From Octopus sinensis (Eukaryota): a stretch of DNA of 64,000 bases. Below the pieces are notes generated by a model. That model did no database searches. It was not told the origin of the DNA and was given only the letters and a program-made list of their open reading frames with translations. Location: the NCBI RefSeq assembly GCF_006345805.1, contig NC_043000.1:52390001-52454000 (forward strand), read 5' to 3'. Shown here in pieces: positions 3,950 through 54,759 of this stretch (within the stretch, counting starts at the first letter, position 1; each line of letters begins with the position of its first letter). The position numbers were made by a program, and so were the translations under genes.

Positions 3950-4570
3950 ACCAATCGACTCCACTAGTATTTATTTTTCTTTAAGCCTGTAAGTTATCCC
4001 ATCGGTCTCTTTGTTCAAACCACTAAATTGTGGGGATATATACACACCAACACCGGTATGAAACCGTGACTGGTGGACAAACACACAATGACACCCATAT
4101 ACATATACATACGTACGTACATAAATACATGCGTACATACATACATACTTATGAGGGAGTGGTAAAAAGTTCCTGACTTAGGGTAAAAGAAAATAAAAGA
4201 GGGTCAGTTAATTATGATTTTGTTCAACATATTCCGCCCTCAGATTCACACTTCAAATAGCGGTCCTTCATTTCTTTCTAAGCCCTGCAAAGACCACGGA
4301 AGATTAGGCCTCTAAACAGGCCTTTCGCGTAACTATTAAAGCCAGGAGATTCTCAGTACCCCGTCGCACACACATACACAGACACACACACACACACACA
4401 AACACAATCGACGGGCTTCTTTCATTTTCCGTCAGGCAAAAGCACTCACAAACCTTGGTTGGCCCGGGGATATAGACTATAACAGGAGACGCTTACCTAA
4501 TGTGCCACTCAGTGGGACTGAAAACAGAACTGTGTGGTTGGCAAGCAATAATCTTCACACTCACTCGCAC
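3950..4570 (-). mobile_element. Degenerate tRNA-derived SINE family A copy, split by a mariner MITE
   Basis: 3950-4100 and 4400-4570 match the two halves of the intact copy at 31467-31892 (e.g. atcggtctctt..., gacgggcttctttc..., agtgggactgaa...). Confidence 0.8.
4150..4368. mobile_element. Short mariner-type MITE (~220 bp)
   Basis: Degenerate TIRs tgagggagtggtaaaaagttcctgactt vs (rc) cgacggggtactgagaatctcctggctt, 18/28 matches. It sits in the TA/CA tract of the SINE. Confidence 0.6.
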
Positions 4571-7500
4571 CTTGGAGTATTGATAATATATGCATGATTG
4601 CATTACCGTTATATAAACAGCTCTAAAACAAACGTAAATCGCATTTAAACGAAGACCATGCGATGGATTAGCTAGTGCCTCTGAACCTCTTTACTTGCTA
4701 TCTGCTCACTACTTCTAACGTCATTTCCATTCTCCATGTGGATGGGAAGCACCAGTATCTTGCAGGGAATATTGAATATTTAGTATGGATTTTATGGCGG
4801 CTATATCATGGCTAAATACTCTGGCAGACGTTTCAAAACAATTATGAATATCTTGACAGGATCGTGTTTATATTAGAGAATATAAAAACAATAAAAGAAA
4901 AGAAATGAAAAAAGAAAACACTGCTTAGCGCATAAATAGTGAAGTCAGTTTTAATTTTGTTTAAATGTAATATGCTTCCGTAGAAATGTTTATCTCACTT
5001 TGAATTACTTTGCTCTTACTAAGAATTAGAAATAATTAACCACATTGCTATTGTTGTTAAGATCCAATCAGTACTGATTAGGTAGTCCTTAGCCTTAGTA
5101 ATCTTGTCTTATCTTTAGACACATATTGTCTAGGTTTACATTATTCCTTGTAATATTCCCTTTCAAGGTGGTAGGATATAATGTTTAGACATTCGTTCAG
5201 CTACTGATACTTTCATGTCTTGCGACCAAATAGGATCACTTTTGTCGATCCATAGAGTGGATTTAGCACATGGTGAGATATATTCCAATTTACTTCCGTA
5301 ATTAATACCATGATTGTCTTTGTTGAAGCTTAATCCTGGTCATAGCTGATTGATCAAACTAATATCGTTTCAAACCATGGTTACCTTCCCATTTTGCATA
5401 GTAAAGATTATCCCACGAATTCTTCCGTTTATTTTTTTTTACAGATAGCTTATAGTTATTTCACTGTTATTTCTATACTTTTTCTGTCTCATAAAGTGAC
5501 CACCAAAAGACTCCTTCGCTAGCTCGACACTATAAATGTTGCGTAGAAAGGTACCTTCATTTCAAAATCCAATTTCAGTTTTCTAGCCAAAGGTGATCAA
5601 AGCAAAATTAATTTCACCTAGACAAATATAGATATTTGATATGAATTTCGTAGACTAATATGCTCCTTAGTTTTAAATGTTGTCTCACTTGCTTCTCATC
5701 ATCGTTAAGGATTATTCTTTTCTTATGAGTGTAATTGAAGTGAATGAGCGTCGATTATCGTTCACTAGATTAAATATAACAGCTTTTACTTAAAAATTTA
5801 ATATCACATAAATACATCTGGGAATCAACATTATGAATTAGTTTGAAGTACGTTTTCCTTCATAGAAATATGTTTTCCAATATCGATACCATGTTTTATG
5901 TTAAAACACAATGAATTGCACATCTATTCCTGTGCTGAGAGAGATCATGTAGAAGAGAGAGAGAGAGAGGTGTGCGTGCATGTGTGTGTGTGTGTGTGAA
6001 ATATGTATCGAGAGAGTGCGTGAGTGAGAGAGAAAAAGAGAGATTCATTAAACTGACATAACCTTTGCTTGGGATAAAGTCTATTTCGCTGTCAGAACTT
6101 CCACGAAATTTCCTTCAAAATAGAGAAGTGTTAATGAAATCTTACGAACATGTGATAAACAATGTCTCCGTAAACGTTTTTCGACTAAAGCATTTTACAT
6201 ATAATATACTGAATAATAAAAAAACTAAATGTGTCTATAATTAAGTTTACAATTTATATAACAATATAAATGAATATTCAGATATTTGAAAATTATTACC
6301 TGAAGGATAATTTTATAATGGCTGCTATAAAACCTCTATACCATATGCGGATAATAATTTTCTGACAATTACTTAGACAACTATGTCTACAAAAAAGTAA
6401 GCGCAATTTTTGAAACAGTAGAAACATCAATAAAAACAAAACAAAACAATTTGTATCTTATCAAATATTCAGCCCATTGGTACTAATAGAAAATAAATAA
6501 ATTGTTTTTAAACACGAGCTATATTGATAATCCTATCATCAACCCTTCACGTTTTGCTTGAAACTTCGAAGCTTATCTCCTCCAATGTCCTTACATATAT
6601 TTGAATCTTTATAATAAAGAATTATATTTCTCTAAAAACCTAAATGGTAGATCGTATTTCATCGAAGAGTGTTGTCTTTATATATTATGTTAATTTTATA
6701 TGTACTAGTAAATTTGAAATGATGCACTGTTATATTTAACACATGGCATTACAGAGATATTAGTGCGAACAGAACAATAAATAACTGGCAAAATTTACAG
6801 ACTACACGATACTTTGTAGGAATTAATAAATTCAACCAAGTTTAAATGTATGTAAAAAGAAATAAGTATTGTTTAAGCCTCAAAGAGAATGTGAAATTAG
6901 GTTCTAATAAGAATTGAAACTATCTCTCTTTAAAAGAGGTTTCTACACCAGGATACAACAGAAGTACATTTTCTGACTGTTATAAAGAACGCATGTTAAT
7001 ATCCATTGCAGCAATCAAATACTTTCGAGCAACATTGAACGAAGGTTTAAGTAAAGCAATATTAAACAAATGAAATAGTTGATTGATGTAAATACAACAA
7101 AAATATTTTTTAACGATTACTTCCAGATATATTTCTAATCGTAGAAATATTTCTTTCCGATTATCTACGAGGTCAACACTAGTAGTACAGACTTGTGTTT
7201 AAAAGAATTGCAGTCATCAGTATCCAGTCGTTCTTTATGATTATGGCGAACCTATGACTATATTATCTAATGCATCATTTGTATTTTCATGTAAGTAGTA
7301 CATAATTTAAGTGAAACATCGTTGCTATAACTACCAATCAGTGTTACAAATTACGATCGCTTTCGTTGGCTCTATACTATGGCGGTTGACATTTAGTACC
7401 AGATTAAACTCGACCGAACAGTTTGAAGTGGATTGCATGTATTATCGCTAATCTAATGCGTCCTAACCGCGATCACCTTATCATATTTATAAATGGATTA

Positions 7501-10109: not shown

Positions 10110-10633
10110 TCTTGTAGGTTTTTCTATATGATTTATATTCGACAGATATTTGTCCTCATTTTGTTTGTTGTTAACAGATGTCTTCGGGAAATTTCGAACC
10201 TGGGTTCTCATTCCTAAGATATTTTTCGTTATTATTATTATTGTTATTGTTCAGGTCACTGCTTGGAATCGAACTCGGAATCTTGGAGTCAGTAGCCCGC
10301 GCTCTTAACCACTACGCTATATGTCCGAGGGCAATTATCGAGTGAATTTTAGGACTTATAAATCTAATATTTTTCTATCCTTCCTTAATACCGGTTCCCA
10401 TATGCTTAAGGAAGGATGGAAAATACTGGTTCCCATAGAAAGGAAGGATAGAAAAATATTAGATTTATAAACCCAAAAATTCACTCCATAATTGCCCACG
10501 GGCATATGGCGTAGTAGTTAGGAGCGCGGGCTACTAACCCCAAGATTCCGAGTTCCAAGCAGTTACCTTAAAATCATCAACAACAATAATAATGATGACT
10601 ACCTTAGGAATGAGAATCCAGGTTCCAAATTTC
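10110..10633. mobile_element. Fold-back pair of tRNA-headed repeats
   Basis: Inverted arms 10188-10386 and 10440-10633. The minus-strand arm has an A box (TAGCGTAGTGG) and B box (GAGTTCGATTCC). The plus-strand arm has a damaged B box. Confidence 0.85.
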
Positions 10634-18476: not shown

Positions 18477-18684
18477 TACTCTTTACTCTTTTACTTGTTT
18501 CAGTCTTTTAAATGCGGCCATGCTGGAATACCACCTTTAATCGAGAAACCGACCCCGGAAGTTATTCTATCGGTCTCTTTTGCCAACCGCTAAGTAACGA
18601 AGACATAAACACGCCAGCACATCGGTTGACAAGCCATGCTATGGGGACAAACACAGACACACAAACACACACACGCATATATAT

Positions 18685-18722
<38 letters not shown>

Positions 18723-31466: not shown

Positions 31467-31677
31467 TACTCTTTTACTCTTTTACTTGTTTCAGTCATTT
31501 GACTGCGGCCCTCCTGGAGCACCGCCTTTAGTCGAGCAAATCGACCCCGGGACTTATTCTTTGTAAGCCCAGTACTTATTCTATCGGTCTCTTTTGCCGA
31601 ACCGCTAAGTGACGGGGACGTAAACACACCAGCATCGGTTGTCAAGCAATGCTAGGGGGACAAACACAGACACACAA

Positions 31678-31726
<49 letters not shown>

Positions 31727-36215: not shown

Positions 36216-37246
36216 TATTGTGTCAGCCCATAATTAACGTGGATAGCATTTGAAAGAGATGGAAAGAGGTGGAAATCCGTTGGTGCCGAATCAGGAGAGT
36301 ACGGTGGGTGTGGCAGCACTTCCCATATTGGCGATATCAGGGCGGGCGTTGTCGTGCAGCTGAAGAACTCCATGCTGACGATTAGGTGTTTTCTCTTGAA
36401 TAGCCGTGTTGCGTCGTTCCATCTATTGAACATAGAGTTCCGCGTTGACCGTTTGGTTCCGTTTAAGCAATTCTTAATGGATAATCCATTCCCAGTTCCA
36501 CCATGCGCACAACATCGTTTTACGCGGATGAAGATCTTGTTTCACATTTTTTACGCCGCTTCATATTGATGTACACGCACCATTTTCCGTTGCCAGTAAC
36601 GATGCGGTAAAGGATTTGATGCTTGTGTCGATGATTTGAGCAGTGACGAGCAAGCAAACCAGTGGAGATAACGTCTCGTTGATTTTCGTTGTTGTCACTT
36701 AAAGCATGCGGAACCCATGCTCCATACTTCTGAACCTTTTCTATCGAGTGAAGATGCTTCTCTATAGCAGTGTGGGAGCATTCCATTTTCTCTACTTGTT
36801 CTCTTGTCGTTTGACAAGAATTTTCGTGCAAAAGGTGATTTAATCGCTCTTTATTGAACTCAACTGGATGGCCAGAACGAGGTGCGTCTTTGAGGTCAAA
36901 ATCTCTATTTTTGAACTTGGCGTACCAATCACGAGCCGTTTTTTCAGCTATGGCATCCTCTCCATACACAGTACAAATGTCGCTAGCAGCATTTGCGGCT
37001 TCAGAACCTTGATTAAAAGTGAAAAAAAGGAGGTGTCGAAAATGCTTGTTTTTCTTAACTTGTCATTCCATTTTAATGATTTGAAAATAAACAAAAATTT
37101 GCTAAAATTAACTAGTGGAAACGCAAAATAGATTCCAAAATGATTCTAAAATAGAATTTTCGAAAAAAATATATTCCAAAATTTAAAAGCGCAATAAATT
37201 CCAAAATTTAAAAAATACGGCAGGAACATAGTTGGCAACCCAATAT
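36216..37246 (-). pseudogene. Mariner transposon (DD34D type), internally deleted
   Basis: ATG at 37071 (ME*QVKKNKHFRHLL); motifs WVPHAL, IVTGNGKW and PHPPYSPD; left TIR tattgggttgccaactatgttc ends at 37246. Confidence 0.92.
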
Positions 37247-42933: not shown

Positions 42934-43317
42934 TGTGGAGGCGCAATGGCCCAGTGGTTAGGGCAGCGGACTCGCGGTCATAGGATCGCGGTTTCGATTC
43001 CCAGACCGGGCGTTGTGAGTGTTTATTGAACGAAAACACCTAAAGCTCCACGAGGCTCCGGTAGGGGATGGTGGTGATCCCTGCTGTACTCTTTGACCAC
43101 AACTTTCTCTTACTTCCTGTTTCTGTTGTACCTATATTTCAAAGGGCCGGCCTTGTCAATCTCTGTGTCACGCTGAATATACTCGAGAACTACGTTAAGG
43201 GTACACGTGTCTGTGGAGTGCTCAGCCACTTACACGTTAATTTCACGAGCAGGCTGTTCCGTTGATTCGGATCAACCGGAACCCTCGTCGTCGTAACCGA
43301 CGGAGTGCTTCCATCCA
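42934..43317 (+). mobile_element. Young full-length tRNA-derived SINE family C (resembles octopus OR-type SINEs)
   Basis: A box TGGCCCAGTGG, B box GGTTTCGATTCC, perfect 11-bp TSD tatattataag (42923-42933, 43318-43328). An older fragment lies at 43845-43940. Confidence 0.95.
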
Positions 43318-47364: not shown

Positions 47365-47647
47365 ATTATTTGAGGGAATAAAATCCAAACTTACAAGGAA
47401 AAAAATTCAATTTAGAAATACTAAATCAAATTTCACACAGTATGATATATATATAGAAAATTAGAAAAAAAACACCTTTTATCTATTATATACGTTTTTA
47501 TAATTTTTTGCATTTTACTTAATCTTTGATATTTTATTGTTATTTCAATTTTAAGTTTTCTATTATATGTAAGTTTCTAGATGGTGTAATTTAATTGATC
47601 ATTTTGAATTGATAAAAGGTAGTTTGTTTTTAATTATATATATATAT

Positions 47648-48530
47648 ATGCGTGACACATTTCTCATTATTCTGACGAGGTCTTCCATCAAAATATTGAA
47701 TTTGGCATTGTCCGTAATGGCTGAGTTCCGGTGGATCAAGTGTTTTGAGGCCATAGGTTTGGCATAGTATGAATGAAGGATTTGGGTTTTACTATTCACA
47801 ATTTCTAGCCAGAGTTCTGTGTCTAGTACTGGTAGTCTATGGTTGGGGTGTTTAGTGGGGTAGTCTATTGAGACCTTAATATTCTGGTGGATGGAGTTAG
47901 CTATTTGCTGGATGCTCTCCATAGTATTAGTTTCTATTACTATACCAACGTTACTCTCTTGTGATGGTGCCTTTACCACTATGTTGATATCATCGACATA
48001 GCGAGAGTACATGTTTACGAGTATGGAGTTCTGTGTTAGGCGTTCTATAAGCCTTCTGTCCCACCATACCATGAAAAGGTTGGCCACATCACCAGCGATA
48101 CTAACGCCGATGGCTGCCCCCTCGTCCTGGGCATATATTTTATTATTAAACTTAAACGTGTGGCCTTTTAGGGTAACTCTTATACTAGCTCCTAGTGCAT
48201 GTGCGATCATTTACTTTACCTGATGGACATTTGGGGGGCTCCGTATGGCTCTGGTCCATCCGCGACATCTTTCTATATGTGTCTTCCTAGCCATAGAAGT
48301 AATTATGGGCGGTCTACCTCTTAAACATCTACTGGGGCAGAAACTACTAAGATTATGCTTATCTAAGTATTCATTATTACATGTCAGTCTAAGTAGGAGG
48401 CCCAGTTCTTCTGTGTTGACATTACGGAACTCCACCTGGCTCTCGTTGATCATCTCCACGCACTTCCCCACCGCAAAATCTACGTCGACCGATGGGTATA
48501 GGGATACCACATCCATGCTACCCACCATAC
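47648..48530 (-). pseudogene. Inverted 5' segment of a Penelope element: RT palm to thumb
   Basis: GSMDVVSLYPSV, GAAIGVSIAGDVANLFM, YSRYVDDI and LPVLDTELW, with one frameshift near 48211. Confidence 0.95.
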
Positions 48531-49809
48531 ATAAAATATATGCCAAGGACGAGGGGGCAGCCATCGGCGTTAGTATCGCTGGTGATGTGGCCAACCTTTT
48601 CATGGTATGGTGGGACAGAAGGCTTATAGAACGCCTAACACAGAACTCTATACTCGTAAACATGTACTCTCGCTATGTTGATGATATCAACATAGTGGTA
48701 AAGGCACCACCACAAGAGAGTAATGTTGATATAGTAATAGAAACTAATACTATGGAGAGCATCCAGCAAATAGGTAACTCCATCCACCAGAGTATTAAGG
48801 TCACAATAGACTACCCCACTAAACACCCCAACCATAGACTACCAGCACTAGGCACTGAACTCTGGCTAGAAATTGTGAATAATAAAACCCAAATCCTTCA
48901 TTCATACTATGCCAAACCTATGGCCTCATAACACTTGATCCACCGGAACTCAACCATTGCGGACAATGCCAAATTCAATATTTTGATAGCAGACCTCGTC
49001 AGAATAATGAGAAATGTGTCACGCATGTGCGAGCCCACAGAGTTAAAGAGACACATACAATATTTCATTCACTGCATGCAGTTCTCAGGTTACAGCCATA
49101 AAGAAAGGATGAGAGTATACAAAGGAGCCATGAAGAAATTAGATAATATATTATCTAATGATAGGAATGGGATTGCCCACTCTATAGGAACAAGTCATGG
49201 AACACTATAGAAAGGACAAAAAAGAAAATAGGGAAGGCCAACTCTTGGTGTGATAGCCATAAATACCAGAGTGACATGTTCGTTGACACCACCCCTGGAG
49301 GTGAACTGGCGTACCGCTTTAGAAGGACCATAGACAAACTTAAGCTAAGAATTAAGGTTGTTGAAAAGCCAGGCAACCCTATCAAATCTATAATTGGTAG
49401 AACATATCCTTTTAGTAGAACCCCCTGTACGGATAAGTACTGTACTGTATGTAGATTTAGCCCACAAACAAACTGTAAAGCCAGAAATGTAGTCTATAGT
49501 ATAAGATGTATAGAGGGACGATGCAGTAACAAGACAACGACATACGAAGGGGAAACGGCAAGAAGCATAGGAGAGCGGGTAAATGGCCATTGGAGACAAC
49601 TCAAGGAAGGTAAAAGCTCACCGATTCTGTACCAACACGCCGAACAGGAACACGGGGGATCAATCAATAACATAGAAATTAAAATATTGTCCACACATAG
49701 AACAGATGCAACAATTAGACAAATTACAGAAGCTACACACATGATAGAAAATAAACCTAGCCTGAATAGAAAACTACAATGGAGCACTAGCACACACCAC
49801 AACATATGA
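48531..49809 (+). pseudogene. Penelope element ORF 3' part: RT (YVDD), thumb and GIY-YIG endonuclease
   Basis: YSRYVDDI; CKARNVVYSIRC...C...TYEGETARSIGERVNGH; RQITEATHMIENKPSLN. Stop at 48929-48931 plus frameshifts. Confidence 0.96.
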
Positions 49810-50569: not shown

Positions 50570-51355
50570 TTTATTCCACACGGGTAGAAATATCGAGGAA
50601 ATAGAAGTTGAAAATGCACTGAGAATAGTTAAAACATTTTTTATTAAAATAAGTAAAACTTTAATCGGTTTCACAGTTTAAACTGATTTTCAGAAGGTTC
50701 AAAAAGAAAAATGTGGCTTATGTCTCAGCTGTCTTGCTTCTGACTAGTTTTTGAAGCTGGCCGTATCTTTATAGTGAGTTCATGGCTCAAATTAGTATAT
50801 GCTTTGAATAGGATTTGATTCATAAACGATAGCCCCATGACTGGTCTTAGACATTTTTGTACGTTTTCTGTCAAGTGTTTCTGTGAACTGTAGCAGGAAC
50901 GTAGTGGGAACGTACGAACATAACAGGAAGCGTACAAAAATTTATAAAATAATCTTGCATTTATTCTCTACAAACAATTGACAGAAAACATTCAGAACAC
51001 TGATTGTTTGGATATGTTCAGTCGACCGTGTCAGGCTTAACTTACGACGCAAAACATTGTCACTTAATACTAACAGACGAACGTACCGAGGAATCTACAA
51101 AAAATTCCAAGACAAGTTATGTAACCATCCTCCACCAATCAAATCCTATTCAAAACATATACTAATTTTACCAATTACCTCCCTATAAAATTAAGGCAAG
51201 CTTCAGACACTAGTCAGAAGCAAGACAGATGCAACATAATCCATATCTTTCTATTTGAACTATTTGAAATCATTGTAAAGTGTGAAACCAGTTAAAATTT
51301 TAAATATATAAAAAAATATTCTATTCGCATTTCATTTTCAACTTCTATTTTTCAT
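50570..51355. mobile_element. Two diverged PLE-type ends in inverted orientation
   Basis: ~50570-50850 vs ~51135-51350 share aatcaaatcctattcaaa..catatactaattt and actagtcagaagcaagacag. A relic hammerhead (CTGAAAA...GAAAccgaTT) lies at 50656-50699 on the minus strand. Confidence 0.65.
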
Positions 51356-51585
51356 ATATATATATATATATATATATATGTGTATAAACAGGTGGTGTAA
51401 TTGCCTTACGGGACTGTCACGTTATGTTGACAGTATACAACCTCTCTATCGCTCCACCACCGCTCATGTCTCTTTGACACATTTATAAATTCAATATTTC
51501 TAATTACGGTGACCACTGAATAGATTACACTGTAAACATATATATTTGCGAAGGCTAGGCATGTATCTCAACTAGCAGGGCTCGC

Positions 51586-53274
51586 GGAAGTGTTTGTGTT
51601 GGTTTGTCGGTTTGCGGTTGTGAGTTGGATTTTGCTGATTATTGTTGTTGAAAACTGTTGCGTCGTGTTGAACCCTATAATTGTTGAATTCTTTGTTGGG
51701 TATGCAAGACCAAACTTATGCGGGAGCAGCAGGCAAGGGCCTGGCTGCGAACGAATTACAGTTGGAAGAAATAAATATCGAGAAGGAAAATTTGAGGAAA
51801 TACTACGACAGTTTCAAGAAGGAAGGATACTGTCTGAGGGTTACACCACCTGAAGATGTGAAAGAAGCGGAGAAAAAATCATAACATACAGAACTTGGAA
51901 TGTGGTCTCAAAGAGAATAGAAGTAGCAGAGGTGGAAGAGATTGAGAAATGTCTACAGGAAATTAAAGGAAGAACTACCTTCTACAATAAAGGTAGAAAA
52001 TACGCTACGGTAGACGTTCATTTTGAAAATGAAGACGAAGCGAAGAAGAACCCAACGACAGTGTTGAGATCGGAAAAATGGTTTCTACTTCCCAATTATT
52101 GTGGAAAAGAGCAGTGAAAATACGAATAAGCAAAATATCACCGGAGCTTGATACAGAAAGAATAGTAGCTGCAATAATATACAATAGCAAAGAGAGCGTG
52201 GACATTCTTAAGGGGGAAAAATCGAAAGAAATAAACTGGTGGGGTTATGCGGTGCAAGCTTCAGTCCACATAACCATGCCATATTTGTATAACATGTCAG
52301 ATTTGTCCCGGAGGAGTTGGTGTTCCCCGACGTGACACGACTGAGAGTCGTGGTGGAGGGGAGATCTCCAGTGTGTTATAAATGTAAGAGCAGAGGGCAC
52401 ATGCAGGATGTGTGTCCTCAAAGAGAAATACAAGAGAAGAGGATAACACTGGAGGAAGGAATGGAGTCTTTGACTGAGGAGTTAGAAAAGGAGAATGTGG
52501 AATTGCATTCGGAAGAGGAAATCGTGAGAACAGATACTGCGGAAAGTGGCGATGAGTTAGTGAAGGAGAAAGAAAAGTAAAGAGCAGAAGAAAAAGAGGA
52601 TAGAAAGCGAACAAGGGTGGAATCACCACCCAAAGACCAAAAAAGGGAAAAACTAAAGAGAAGTCTGCCGACGAGACAGAGGTGGGGACACACGAAGGGA
52701 GAGATACAGCAACTAAAGTGAGTGAAGGTTCAACGTGGGATGAAACGAAAGAATGGTCAACAAAAGTGGAAGAATGTCTGAAAACATGCAAGGAAGGAGG
52801 AAGACCCAAAGGAAAAAAACTCAAAGCTGTAATGTTGTACAAAAAGGATAATGAAATTGAGAAAAAATTAGCGATAATGAAAAATCTAACGAGAGTGAAA
52901 TTGAACCCGAGGATAAACGATAACCAAATAAAGGCTGCAATTGTGTATAAAGAGACGGTAAATAAATTAATAAATTTGTTTACAAATACAGCTGTGTGCC
53001 TAGCGCACTACGTTCGATATGACAGTTTGCCCGGCGTTATAGAACAGGATGAATTACTCGTTTACATTACTGACGAATTACTCTAGATAGTACAACTGTA
53101 ATTGTAAATGAAACTGCGAGCTTTGGGGGGCTCGTAAGCCATTTCATTTAATTCATTATTAATATTTCAGTTCATATCATCCTTTCTGTATTTTTGTTAT
53201 ATGTACCCCATGTCCTGTATTGTATTGTTATGTCCCCTCTTCATTCAGGCCATTGTGCCTATAATAAATATTTT
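51586..53274 (+). mobile_element. ORF1-only (HAL1-like) non-LTR element, L1/Tx1 type
   Basis: 16-bp flanking duplication aactagcagg[g/a]ctcgc (51570-51585, 53275-53290), GT-rich 5' UTR, ~190-bp 3' UTR with AATAAA at 53263-53268, and no RT or endonuclease. Confidence 0.75.
51702..53086 (+). pseudogene. L1/Tx1-like ORF1 nucleic-acid-binding protein (~460 aa before decay)
   Basis: N-terminal TYAGAA; RNP1-like KYATVDVHFENEDEAKK; KIRISKISPE; LRVVVEGRSPV-CYKCKSRGHMQDVC (CX2CX4HX4C at 52374-52415); charged C-terminal half. At least 4 frameshifts. Confidence 0.85.
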
Positions 53275-53293
53275 AACTAGCAGGACTCGCTAT

Positions 53294-53338
53294 CCTGGAC
53301 TGATGACGGGTAAGACCCAGAAACATGCATTCTTCAGG
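53294..53338 (+). ncRNA. Type I hammerhead ribozyme motif
   Basis: cctgga-CTGATGA-c.gggt.aag.accc.a-GAAA-c.atgcat-TC-ttcagg, with predicted cleavage after 53332. Stem I extends via aggactcgc/gtgaatcct beyond an internal loop. Confidence 0.8.
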
Positions 53339-54759
53339 TGTGAATCCTAGCAGGTGGGCGTGCTTGCATCCCCTTCGCAAATATAAGGACACAGGTAATG
53401 TGTCAAAGCCGACAGGAAGCGTCGATGCTTCCTAGGGCTAAATTGCGTTGGTGTAATTCCCTTACGGGACTGTCACGTTATGTTGACAGTATACAACCAC
53501 TCTATTGCTCCACCACCGCCCATGTCTCTTTGAGACATTTAGAAATTCAATATTTCTAATATATATATGTAGATATATACACACAAACACACGCTCATAC
53601 ACACGTACACTATATTTATATATAACCCTTACACAAACACACTCTTCTGTATGTAGAACCAAAAAAGGACTCACTGGTGTTTATCACACAATGCTTAATG
53701 TTAATAGGAAAGCACTGCAAATGTAAGATGTATAACGGAAACGTGTACCTTGAATAACTGTAATTTTTGGTAGCATGGTTACAATACTGATGCTGTATCT
53801 AGAAGAGAATGCAATGATTTAGAGGAGAATAAAAGCCTACAACAAAGCTATTTGATCAATAGTTATATTCTTGATGTGTCCTCCACATACATATAATCTA
53901 ACAAAATAATGGATGTCAGAAATAAGCATAAACGAAAACAAGTTGAGATATTTTGTGTATAACAAAATTTCATACACAATTCTGTTTCAGAAATGTGAAA
54001 GGAAGCACATGCTTGATGGGATTTGATTCAATGTGCTCCTCCAAATCCATTCAATTGCACTACATTATATTGATGTAAGAACTATATAGTATCTCTTTTT
54101 CGCTCAAAGCCATTCAACAGAATGCTTGGAAAGCCTAGTTTAACGTTTAAGATGCAGTAAATTCCTTGACACATATTATCGACAACAAGCACATGAAAAG
54201 TAAATAAGTATATTCCTAACTTTGAGGTATATATCATTTAATTCAGTTCCCTTCCTTTTTTATAACAATATTAGTATATAATATATAATATTCAAGCCAA
54301 TTGTTCCTGCTAAAAGTCTGAAATGTACGTAGTTTTGAAGTAAAAATACACACTACTTGTAAATACTCCTGTTGTGAATGGTAAGAAACCCTCAAGAGAA
54401 CTGAACAACAGAAGGTCTTCAGAGACGAAACCCACCCGAGGCAAATGTTTTGGTCCTTAAATCCTTACACGGTAAGGGGTGGGACTGCATCCAGTTTATG
54501 ACACACACGTACTCTATTGCTAACACTTTTAACCATTTGCATATCAAAAGCGTGCATTTAAACCGCTTCGTGTTTTATCTGCTTGTAACTCCTCTCAGTT
54601 GACTCAGCTTCCAACCTCATCTTTAAAGAAGTAATAACGTTTGTTGTCATGATAGCGATGAAACACCAACGCTATCACAATGTCTCACTCAGGTTTTATT
54701 TCTCTAGACATTAAAATACGAAAAGATATTGCCTTCAAACAGTATGGAGGTCGTTGTGT

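Follow-up and report, generated by a model that had tools for sequence, protein, structure and literature searches.

We analysed a 64-kb stretch of the Octopus sinensis genome (contig NC_043000.1, positions 52,390,001 to 52,454,000; the window) in which a first-pass annotation had picked out a nested retroelement, i.e., an element with open reading frame 1 (ORF1) only, inserted with a 16-bp target-site duplication (TSD) into a hammerhead-bearing, retrozyme-like unit. Coordinates given here are positions within this 64-kb window, and labels such as L001, L004 and L132 denote loci fetched for comparison.

An ORF1-only element is nested in a 351-bp repeat unit

The outermost features of the locus are two 112-nt direct repeats (51393-51504 and 53449-53560), which lie 2056 bp apart and differ at 6 positions (95% identity). 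Inside them, a pair of 16-mers that match at 15/16 positions, AACTAGCAGGGCTCGC at 51570 and AACTAGCAGGACTCGC at 53275, encloses a segment of 1689 bp (51586-53274). Taking out this insert together with one 16-mer leaves a unit of 351 bp (2056-1689-16), which is present in 1.32 copies in the order A followed by B-HHR-C-A', where HHR is the hammerhead-like motif. The first-pass annotation had described the same repeats, the same bounded segment and the same reconstructed unit; all three were borne out. Its overall description of the locus is likewise supported, with the hammerhead itself holding only in part (see below).

The 16-mers have the properties of a TSD. With up to 3 mismatches allowed, searches of both strands of the window and of ~70 kb of DNA from other octopod loci found no further occurrence, and the window holds no additional copy of the unit or of the insert. 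The 3' boundary of the insert is independently confirmed because homology of its 3' untranslated region (UTR) to a family copy at L004 stops at 53273/4, after ...GTGCCTRTAATAAAKATTT. Given this boundary, we estimate that a 15/16 match would arise by chance within 200 nt of the insert 5' end with a probability of ~2e-6. This anatomy and the TSD are direct observations.

The unit itself lies in TA-rich DNA. The TA-rich flanks are weak evidence for a TSD of the unit because their sequence is of low complexity. Segment A can be taken for the 3'-terminal stretch of a unit copy that is truncated at its 5' end and lies ahead of the full unit, i.e., as a partial tandem resembling a pseudo-long terminal repeat (pLTR). 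This arrangement matches the architecture described for Penelope-like elements (PLEs) and retrozymes (PMC8557442).

Table 1 Features of the nested locus (positions in the window; LINE, long interspersed nuclear element).
Feature	Position	Strand	Remarks
(TA)n-rich flank receiving the whole unit	51354..51392	.	Similar ATATATATGTRKATA after the right end, 53559-53585
Segment A, first 112-nt repeat copy	51393..51504	+	95% to 53449-53560; homologous to L132 5040-5175
Segment B of unit	51505..51585	+	3' part supplies the 5' strand of a long helix that extends hammerhead helix I
TSD, 5' copy	51570..51585	+	16-bp; AACTAGCAGGGCTCGC
ORF1-only LINE derivative	51586..53274	+	1689 bp; 5'UTR, broken ORF1, 3'UTR
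GT-rich 5'UTR	51586-51701	+	Part of insert
ORF1 pseudogene	51702..53086	+	Three-frame translation, zf-CCHC match, 279 homologues, model
3'UTR	53087-53274	+	Part of insert
3'UTR hairpin with G-rich loop	53115..53136	+	CUGCGAGC-UUUGGGGG-GCUCG; kept in family copies
Family 3' terminus	53250..53274	+	CCATTGTGCCTATAATAAATATTTT; AATAAA at 53263-53268, no poly(A)
TSD, 3' copy	53275..53290	+	AACTAGCAGGACTCGC; 15/16 to 5' copy
Segment C of unit	53291..53448	+	Hammerhead-like motif first, then conserved stem-loops
Type-I hammerhead-like motif	53294..53338	+	Descriptor match; homologous L132 motifs
Segment A', second 112-nt repeat copy, unit right end	53449..53560	+	Ends in conserved hairpin

The insert is a LINE derivative that lacks ORF2

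The ORF1 coding region is spread over three frames, with at least 4 frameshifts (near 51885, 52105, 52305 and 52650-52700) and in-frame stops at 51882 and 52578. Its layout comprises an N-terminal region, two alpha/beta (RRM-like) modules, a CCHC knuckle (CYKCKSRGHMQDVC, at ~52377-52418; a weak Pfam zf-CCHC match), an E/K-rich linker and a conserved C-terminal domain. The zinc knuckle was the sole match of ORF1 in Pfam and among Protein Data Bank (PDB) sequences, and searching an AlphaFold 2 (AF2) model of ORF1 with Foldseek returned weak ferredoxin/RRM-like matches only. An exhaustive HMMER search with the stitched ORF1 core recovered 279 homologues; those whose source names were looked up come mostly from Octopus bimaculoides and O. 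sinensis, where they are labelled 'uncharacterized' or 'CCHC-type domain-containing'. Other searches for ORF1 homologues gave 0-2 matches each, and their candidate lists were probably swamped by E/K-rich words. One O. bimaculoides protein (P0030, A0A0L8I7X9, 1041 aa) joins an ORF1-family N-terminus to WD40 repeats and is either an exonised element or a gene-model artefact.

A tblastn search found no ORF2 anywhere in the window, and none was found within 5-8 kb of the ORF1-only copies at L004 (3 copies), L005 (2), L131 and L132. The copies in the window and at these four loci have a common 5'UTR-ORF1-3'UTR layout. Because other ORF2-less copies match the window element in layout and ends, it is a member of an ORF2-less family like the mammalian HAL1 (half-L1), rather than the product of a one-off deletion. 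Relatives described below carry ORF2 while the window element does not, and it is therefore a derivative rather than an autonomous member. Family membership and the absence of ORF2 were both established directly, and we conclude that the insert is a HAL1-like non-autonomous LINE derivative. Two other origins were considered and rejected. A processed pseudogene of a host gene does not fit an insert whose ends, 3'UTR hairpin and ORF-only structure recur in many copies and whose ORF is a LINE ORF1. Carriage of ORF1 by a PLE does not fit ORF homologues that sit upstream of ORF2s with APE and reverse transcriptase (RT) domains, nor the nearby PLE, which shares no sequence with the insert.

The 3'UTR of the window element is 95% identical over 42 nt to that of L004 copy 2 in a region that holds a hairpin. 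This hairpin occurs at 53115-53136 in the window, at 7086-7107 and 8605-8626 in L004, at 5584-5608 in L005 and at 15094-15115 in L001, a locus with a full-length LINE from Argonauta hians. The loop, UUUG(N)GGGG (UUUGGGG-type), is common to the ORF1-only copies and the Argonauta LINE. The stem differs between window-type and L005-type copies, with three compensatory pairs as judged by eye. Single-sequence folding returned the hairpin in 4/5 copies at modest z-scores, and MAFFT followed by RNAalifold gave a poor consensus. The hairpin is a candidate recognition element for RT.

A second ORF1-only element occupies a homologous unit at locus L132

At another O. sinensis locus, L132, we found a homologue of the unit over its whole length (64% identity), which after insert removal measures 341-343 bp and is present in ~1.6 copies. 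The insert here is also an ORF1-only element (5255-7107), likewise decayed and diverged from that of the window (ORF1 ~40% identical). The two junctions are homologous. The window junction reads ...CTCAACTAGCAGGGCTCGC / element / AACTAGCAGGACTCGC-TATCCTGGA-CTGATGA, and the L132 junction reads ...CACCAACAGCTAGCGAGGCT / element / AGCTAGCAAAGA-CTGATGA (the left-flank unit sequence is also written ...CAACAGCTAGCGAGGCT). This second case was established directly. The first-pass annotation had suggested that other ORF1 copies be inspected for their flanks; these are unrelated to the unit at six loci but consist of unit sequence at L132.

L132 carries, in addition, a truncated direct copy of the unit and, at the upstream end, an inverted partial copy. 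PLE-type insertions typically show such direct and inverted partial copies (PMC8557442). We rejected the idea that the window and L132 loci are orthologous or segmental duplicates, as their flanks are unrelated, their architectures differ, and L132 lies within a Wtap-domain gene.

About 900 bp downstream in L132 (7954-8053) lies a third, much shorter copy, i.e., a 68-bp 5'-truncated ORF1-element copy with a perfect 16-bp TSD (CTTGAACTTGCACCAA). Its 3' end reads ...AATAAAGAATAA-AGCTAGCAAAGA and includes 12 nt of unit sequence and no ribozyme, and its junction shows 2-nt microhomology (CT). Because this copy ends with the 12 nt AGCTAGCAAAGA, template RNAs must have read from the element into the unit.

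The unit is a structured repeat with a predicted hammerhead-like motif

The motif at 53294-53338 has its elements in type-I order. The helix I 5' strand CCUGGA (53294-99) is followed by the CUGAUGA box (53300-06), a 4-bp helix II (C-GGGU-AAG-ACCC-A, 53307-19), the GAAA box (53320-23), a minimal helix III of essentially one pair with the loop CAUGCAU (53324-30), U16.1 and C17 (53331-32; predicted cleavage after 53332), and the helix I 3' strand UUCAGG (53333-38). A relaxed hammerhead descriptor matched the window at this site only (0.007 matches expected); the bare CTGANGA...GAAA pattern is common, with 8 found versus 3 expected. The L132 motifs, at 4913 and 7120, read CCAGA-CUGAUG(C/A)-AGAGCAACUACCCU-GAAA-CUAG-UC|UCUGG. 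A metagenome scan with CTGATGA-N11-15-GAAACATGCAT yielded at least 120 chance matches, none of which was related to the unit.

Every copy of the motif seen has at least one defect. The window motif is mismatched at 10.1/11.1 (C.A, where helix II begins) and at 15.2/16.2 (C.U); L132 has A9C in U1 and an A.C mismatch in helix II of both copies. As a whole, the window copy is an old and dead one, in which ORF1 is broken and the ribozyme crippled. Rfam reported no hammerhead in the whole window (gathering score) or in 51200-53800 and L132 4500-7600 (E<=10). We therefore name the unit retrozyme-like and its motif hammerhead-like, with putative activity. For the type I hammerhead in the first-pass annotation, then, the core boxes, helix I, helix II and the UC site stand in order, but Rfam is silent, the helices contain mismatches and helix III is minimal.

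Reconstruction of the empty site brings the two parts of the unit together. In it, a long continuous helix I forms between the end of segment B, 16-mer included, and sequence just past the predicted cleavage site, and the folded monomer has a minimum free energy (MFE) z-score of -4.4 (L132 monomer, z = -4.0). That the 16-mer is the 5' strand of an extended stem I, as had been annotated, therefore holds in the empty-site fold but not fully in the window-L132 consensus, where the helix covers only the last 4 nt of the 16-mer and the next 9. The consensus fold has 63 pairs, of which 16 are compensatory and 0 broken, against 0-5 compensatory pairs and ~40% pairing in slid controls, a statistic that leans in its own favour because the structure was derived from the same two sequences. 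For segment B, consensus helices 1 and 3 contain 4 compensatory pairs each.

Segment A is closed by a terminal hairpin, TTAGAAAT-TCAAT-ATTTCTAA (53539-53559 and 51483-51503), which matches L132 5153-5175 at 22/23 nt (the hairpin itself lies at L132 5154-5174). On its right side, the whole window insertion ends directly after this hairpin, which may be the defined 3' end at which reverse transcription of the unit starts. GC content is 45% in the window unit and 39% in that of L132, and no head derived from a tRNA or short interspersed nuclear element (SINE) was found in the unit. The unit is a structured non-coding repeat with the partial-tandem architecture that PLEs and their non-autonomous retrozymes leave.

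The host unit might instead be some other structured non-autonomous repeat (e.g., a PLE- or LINE-dependent, SINE-like one) whose CUGAUGA...GAAA is non-catalytic. The silence of Rfam even at E<=10, the minimal helix III, the defects in all copies seen, and the conservation of other blocks of the unit (e.g., the terminal hairpin), which is at least as high as that of the core, would all fit such an origin. It does not readily explain why the core boxes and the UC cleavage dinucleotide are kept across 36% divergence, or why helix I covaries (G-C/A-U and U-A/C-G). Moreover, helix III of L132, one pair with a palindromic CUAG tetraloop, is as in amphibian hammerheads that act as dimers (PMC7229834), the relaxed descriptor expects just 0.007 matches per window, and the size, GC (39-45%) and tandem arrangement of the unit suit non-LTR retrozymes. 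We therefore regard a non-hammerhead host unit as quite unlikely.

A PLE fragment does occur in the window 1.6 kb upstream (47599-49809). It consists of an RT (YVDD) on the + strand (48245-48931), an ORF for a GIY-YIG-type endonuclease (49276-49809) and an inverted, head-to-head RT copy on the - strand (47599-48210). Its tail showed no hammerhead pattern, and the fragment was rejected as the source of unit or insert, as it has no sequence similarity to either. Between the PLE and the unit lies a 174-nt inverted repeat (50688-50861 and 51096-51269; 79% complementary, 234 nt apart) that looks like a miniature inverted-repeat transposable element (MITE) and has TA microsatellites on its flanks.

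Full-length relatives show Tx1-like behaviour

Autonomous relatives of the insert were identified directly. In A. hians L001, the ORF1 homologue overlaps with the beginning of an ORF2 that contains APE, RVT_1 and zf-RVT domains and whose best solved match is human L1 ORF2p (full length, 4e-42); the whole element is 5438 bp long and is bounded by a perfect 16-bp TSD. Full-length copies, with ORF2 directly after ORF1, are also present at O. sinensis L133 and L134. Copy 2 at L133 (5251 bp) has a perfect 17-bp TSD, AACTGAATACTCGTCAT at 4361 and 9629, sandwiched between copies, and a variant of its target sequence is found again beside the next L133 copy. The full-length LINE at L134 lies inside an (ATT)n tract (4720-4777 and 10346-10372), and another subfamily therefore has a microsatellite target. 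Both ORF1-only and full-length copies often form head-to-tail junctions, in which a 3' end abuts the GT-rich 5'UTR of the next copy; these occur at L004 (5965-10510), L005 (4462-6516), L002 (84-110) and L133 (1-10850). In O. bimaculoides, the head-to-tail arrays coincide with assembly gaps.

Clade Tx1 is characterised by 16-bp TSDs, tandem insertions and the use of other transposons as targets (Kojima 2015, PMC4494074). The 16-17-bp TSDs, target-specific tandem insertion and microsatellite insertion of the full-length relatives are, by analogy, hallmarks of Tx1-like behaviour. The relatives would thus be L1-superfamily, Tx1-like elements, as indicated by the best solved match to L1 ORF2p and the zf-RVT domain.

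The window element and its full-length relatives have a common terminal motif, GCC..TGTG..AATAAA(G)A.., and these relatives are distant (ORF1 26-35% identical). A search for an autonomous partner had been proposed along with the first-pass annotation; it found full-length relatives with the same 3' end motif but none of the same subfamily. Because the window element is immobile alone, yet keeps the family 3'UTR hairpin and 3' terminus, we infer that it was mobilised in trans. The ORF2 protein of full-length relatives may have served for this, which would fit a 'stringent' RT.

Target preference for the unit is the favoured reading

Taking the two unit-associated elements and the relatives together, our best reading, which we consider somewhat probable, is that an ORF1-only LINE inserted into the hammerhead-like unit by target-primed reverse transcription (TPRT) with a preference for this target. 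In such a scenario, the structured 351-nt repeat would first have inserted, as 1.32 units in partial tandem, into TA-rich DNA. The ORF1-only derivative of an L1-superfamily, Tx1-like LINE would later have integrated by TPRT where segment B ends (9 nt upstream of the CUGAUGA box), with duplication of 16 bp of the extended helix I strand. Preference for the site would likely have two sources, namely a short nick-site motif, C/A[AG]CT, and template RNAs that extend by a few bases into the unit and may anneal to a new unit copy. A role for co-transcribed target sequence has been proposed for Tx1 targeting (PMC4494074).

Preference, as opposed to mere presence, is suggested by the homologous junction at the non-orthologous L132, by the unit-derived 3' tail of the 68-bp copy and by the rarity of the unit. 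The unit was not found in the remaining ~62 kb of the window or in ~100-113 kb of other octopod loci, and because it is rare in the sampled DNA, finding 1 of ~9 independently sampled ORF1 loci in it is unlikely by chance (p ~0.03 by a rough estimate, before the same-site condition). The other copies were sampled via 12 protein-anchored look-ups, and the counts are small.

Several observations weigh against this reading. Just two unit-associated copies are known, and one is the window locus, which was ascertained for this association. ORF1-only copies at six loci (L004, L005, L131, L126, L127 and L135) lie in unrelated flanks or abut other copies, and the same is true of the 68-bp copy at L132 and the full-length Argonauta LINE. 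Because most copies lie outside the unit, any specificity is partial or restricted to a subfamily. The window unit contains C/A[AG]CT once and the L132 unit three times, and the motif is also found at the L133 insertion; as it recurs at the site and elsewhere, the coincidence of site between window and L132 is less surprising. At L132, the duplication spans just ~11-14 nt and is imperfect, its copies differing at 2-3 positions. Among the fetched loci we saw no autonomous partner of the window subfamily, the closest full-length relatives being 33-35% identical in ORF1, and the Tx1 label comes from behaviour and domains rather than RT phylogeny. To these points must be added the negative Rfam searches described above.

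The first-pass annotation had raised a Tx1-type family that targets retrozymes. The second, non-orthologous case at L132 and the Tx1-like relatives argue for such a family, but the six loci with unrelated flanks do not, and the nick motif explains part of the choice of site.

The same data could reflect no preference for the unit, i.e., two chance insertions of a LINE whose endonuclease favours the short motif C/A[AG]CT. Most family copies examined do lie outside the unit, the window locus was chosen for this very feature, and the nick-site motif, nearly unique within the unit, is common to insertions in an unrelated target (L133). Chance alone nevertheless sits poorly with the rarity of the unit relative to ~1/9 loci, and with the third, RNA-derived copy (the 68-bp one at L132), which has unit sequence at its 3' end. 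We consider two chance insertions unlikely.

A less likely alternative: spread of the unit and its cargo as a composite

The two loci also allow a different history, in which after one ancestral insertion the unit and its ORF1 cargo spread as one RNA by the retrozyme/PLE route, with the hammerhead cutting the multimer and setting the 3' end of the ORF1 RNA. The period of such a composite would be 2056 bp in the window and 2207 bp in L132. Unit sequence does lie on both sides of ORF1 at both loci, which can be read as ~1.05-1.1 composite copies, the upstream end of L132 carries part of a unit in inverted orientation, as in PLE insertions, and in the window copy the TSD restores a helix I strand beside the ribozyme core.

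Relationships among the ORF1s speak against it. The window ORF1 is 56-70% identical at the amino-acid level to the unit-free L004 copies but 36-46% identical to that of L132, and the L132 ORF1 is also nearer to the L004 and L131 ORF1s than to the window ORF1; the two are not mutual closest relatives, and each is nearer to unit-free copies. Because the window TSD is 15/16 identical while the units differ by 36%, the window insertion is later than the split of the unit lineages, and at least 2 separate insertions are needed. Furthermore, the 68-bp retrocopy stops 12 nt into the unit rather than at the ribozyme cleavage site, at most 1 intact-looking ribozyme flanks the cargo per locus, and no two same-sequence composites with different flanks were seen among the sampled loci. 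A composite of this kind is, in our view, improbable. The first-pass annotation had offered it as the second option (a ribozyme that processes an ORF1 mRNA and a retrozyme route that spreads protein cargo), and it found no support from the ORF1 relationships or the end of the 68-bp copy.

A further idea is that a LINE lineage could live inside retrozymes by homing to the helix I strand immediately before the hammerhead; its TSD would rebuild this strand so that the ribozyme survives, the element would be transcribed as a passenger of a highly expressed retrozyme, and the host hammerhead would trim its 3' end. Onward copying as ORF1 cargo by the retrozyme/PLE machinery is a further possibility. 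We think it rather doubtful that such a lineage exists; if it does, a ribozyme would tie together two retrotransposition systems that are otherwise unrelated (L1-type TPRT and PLE/retrozyme).

Other features of the window

Short interspersed repeats at 18483-18687, 31474-31702 and 43125-43308 are 75-87% identical to sequence in O. bimaculoides L004. A mariner/Mos1-like transposase fragment lies at 36520-36969 on the - strand (HTH_48, E = 1e-5).

Discussion

Known targets of target-specific LINEs are rRNA, snRNA and tRNA genes, microsatellites and a few transposons. If confirmed as preferred landing sites, hammerhead retrozymes would form a new class of LINE target and would connect the two least-understood animal retroelement systems, namely Tx1-like LINEs and PLE/retrozyme elements. 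The key interest lies in whether the LINE exploits the retrozyme's transcription and ribozyme. Should the association come down to two chance hits, the locus would be no more than an ordinary fossil of nested repeats. Two results matter in their own right. A cephalopod analogue of mammalian HAL1 is documented, as a multi-copy ORF1-only family with a conserved 3'UTR hairpin that is now annotated in Octopus genomes as dozens of 'uncharacterized CCHC proteins'. The structured, covarying hammerhead-like repeat in octopods is a direct candidate for self-cleavage and circular RNA. The kind of system is already known, from Tx1-type targeting and HAL1-like ORF2 loss; as far as the literature searched shows, the target and the cephalopod host are new.

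Comparison with known systems

The closest parallels are target-specific Tx1-clade LINEs found inside another transposon, i.e., Tx1L in Tx1D of Xenopus, and Tx1-Mar and SINEU in Mariner-N4_AMi of crocodilians (PMC4494074). As in those systems, a LINE lineage occupies one position of another mobile element with TSDs of 16 bp, tandem insertions sandwich the TSD (in the relative at L133), non-autonomous passengers use the same target, and read-through or co-transcription with the target is proposed as an aid to targeting. The octopus system differs in its target, a retrozyme-like RNA element with a hammerhead-like motif, in an inserted element that has ORF1 only, and in a specificity that is apparently partial. 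We found no description of a hammerhead retrozyme-like element as a LINE target in the literature searched.

Mammalian HAL1 elements are non-autonomous L1 derivatives that encode ORF1p only (PMC5753468). The octopod family resembles them in having kept ORF1 and lost ORF2, in its multiple copies, in a 3' terminal motif found also in distant full-length relatives, and in presumed mobilisation in trans. It differs from them in belonging to an octopod Tx1-like lineage, in an ORF1 with alpha/beta modules, a CCHC knuckle and a C-terminal domain, and in having a stringent-type 3'UTR hairpin, no poly(A) and often head-to-tail arrays.

Metazoan non-LTR retrozymes have been described by Cervera & de la Pena 2020 (PMC7229834) and in a preprint by Li et al. 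2026 (10.64898/2026.07.22.740005). The octopus unit, known from sequence alone, is like them in its length of ~350 nt (~170-400 bp for the class), low GC, tandem or partial-tandem copies, highly structured RNA, predicted type-I hammerhead-like topology, weak helix III with a palindromic loop, and PLE-like insertion architecture. Unlike them, it is present in 1.3-1.6 units per locus, and its ribozyme is silent in Rfam and defective in the window copy.

Finally, in R2 and other LINEs a self-cleaving ribozyme acts on the co-transcript with the target; in R2 this ribozyme, of the hepatitis delta virus (HDV)-like type, belongs to the element and cuts its 5' end. The arrangement in octopus is similar in that a ribozyme adjoins the boundary of an element, and R2, a target-specific LINE, relies on transcription of its target. 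The octopus hammerhead, however, belongs to the target and lies 3' of the element, and any use of it by the element would be conjectural.

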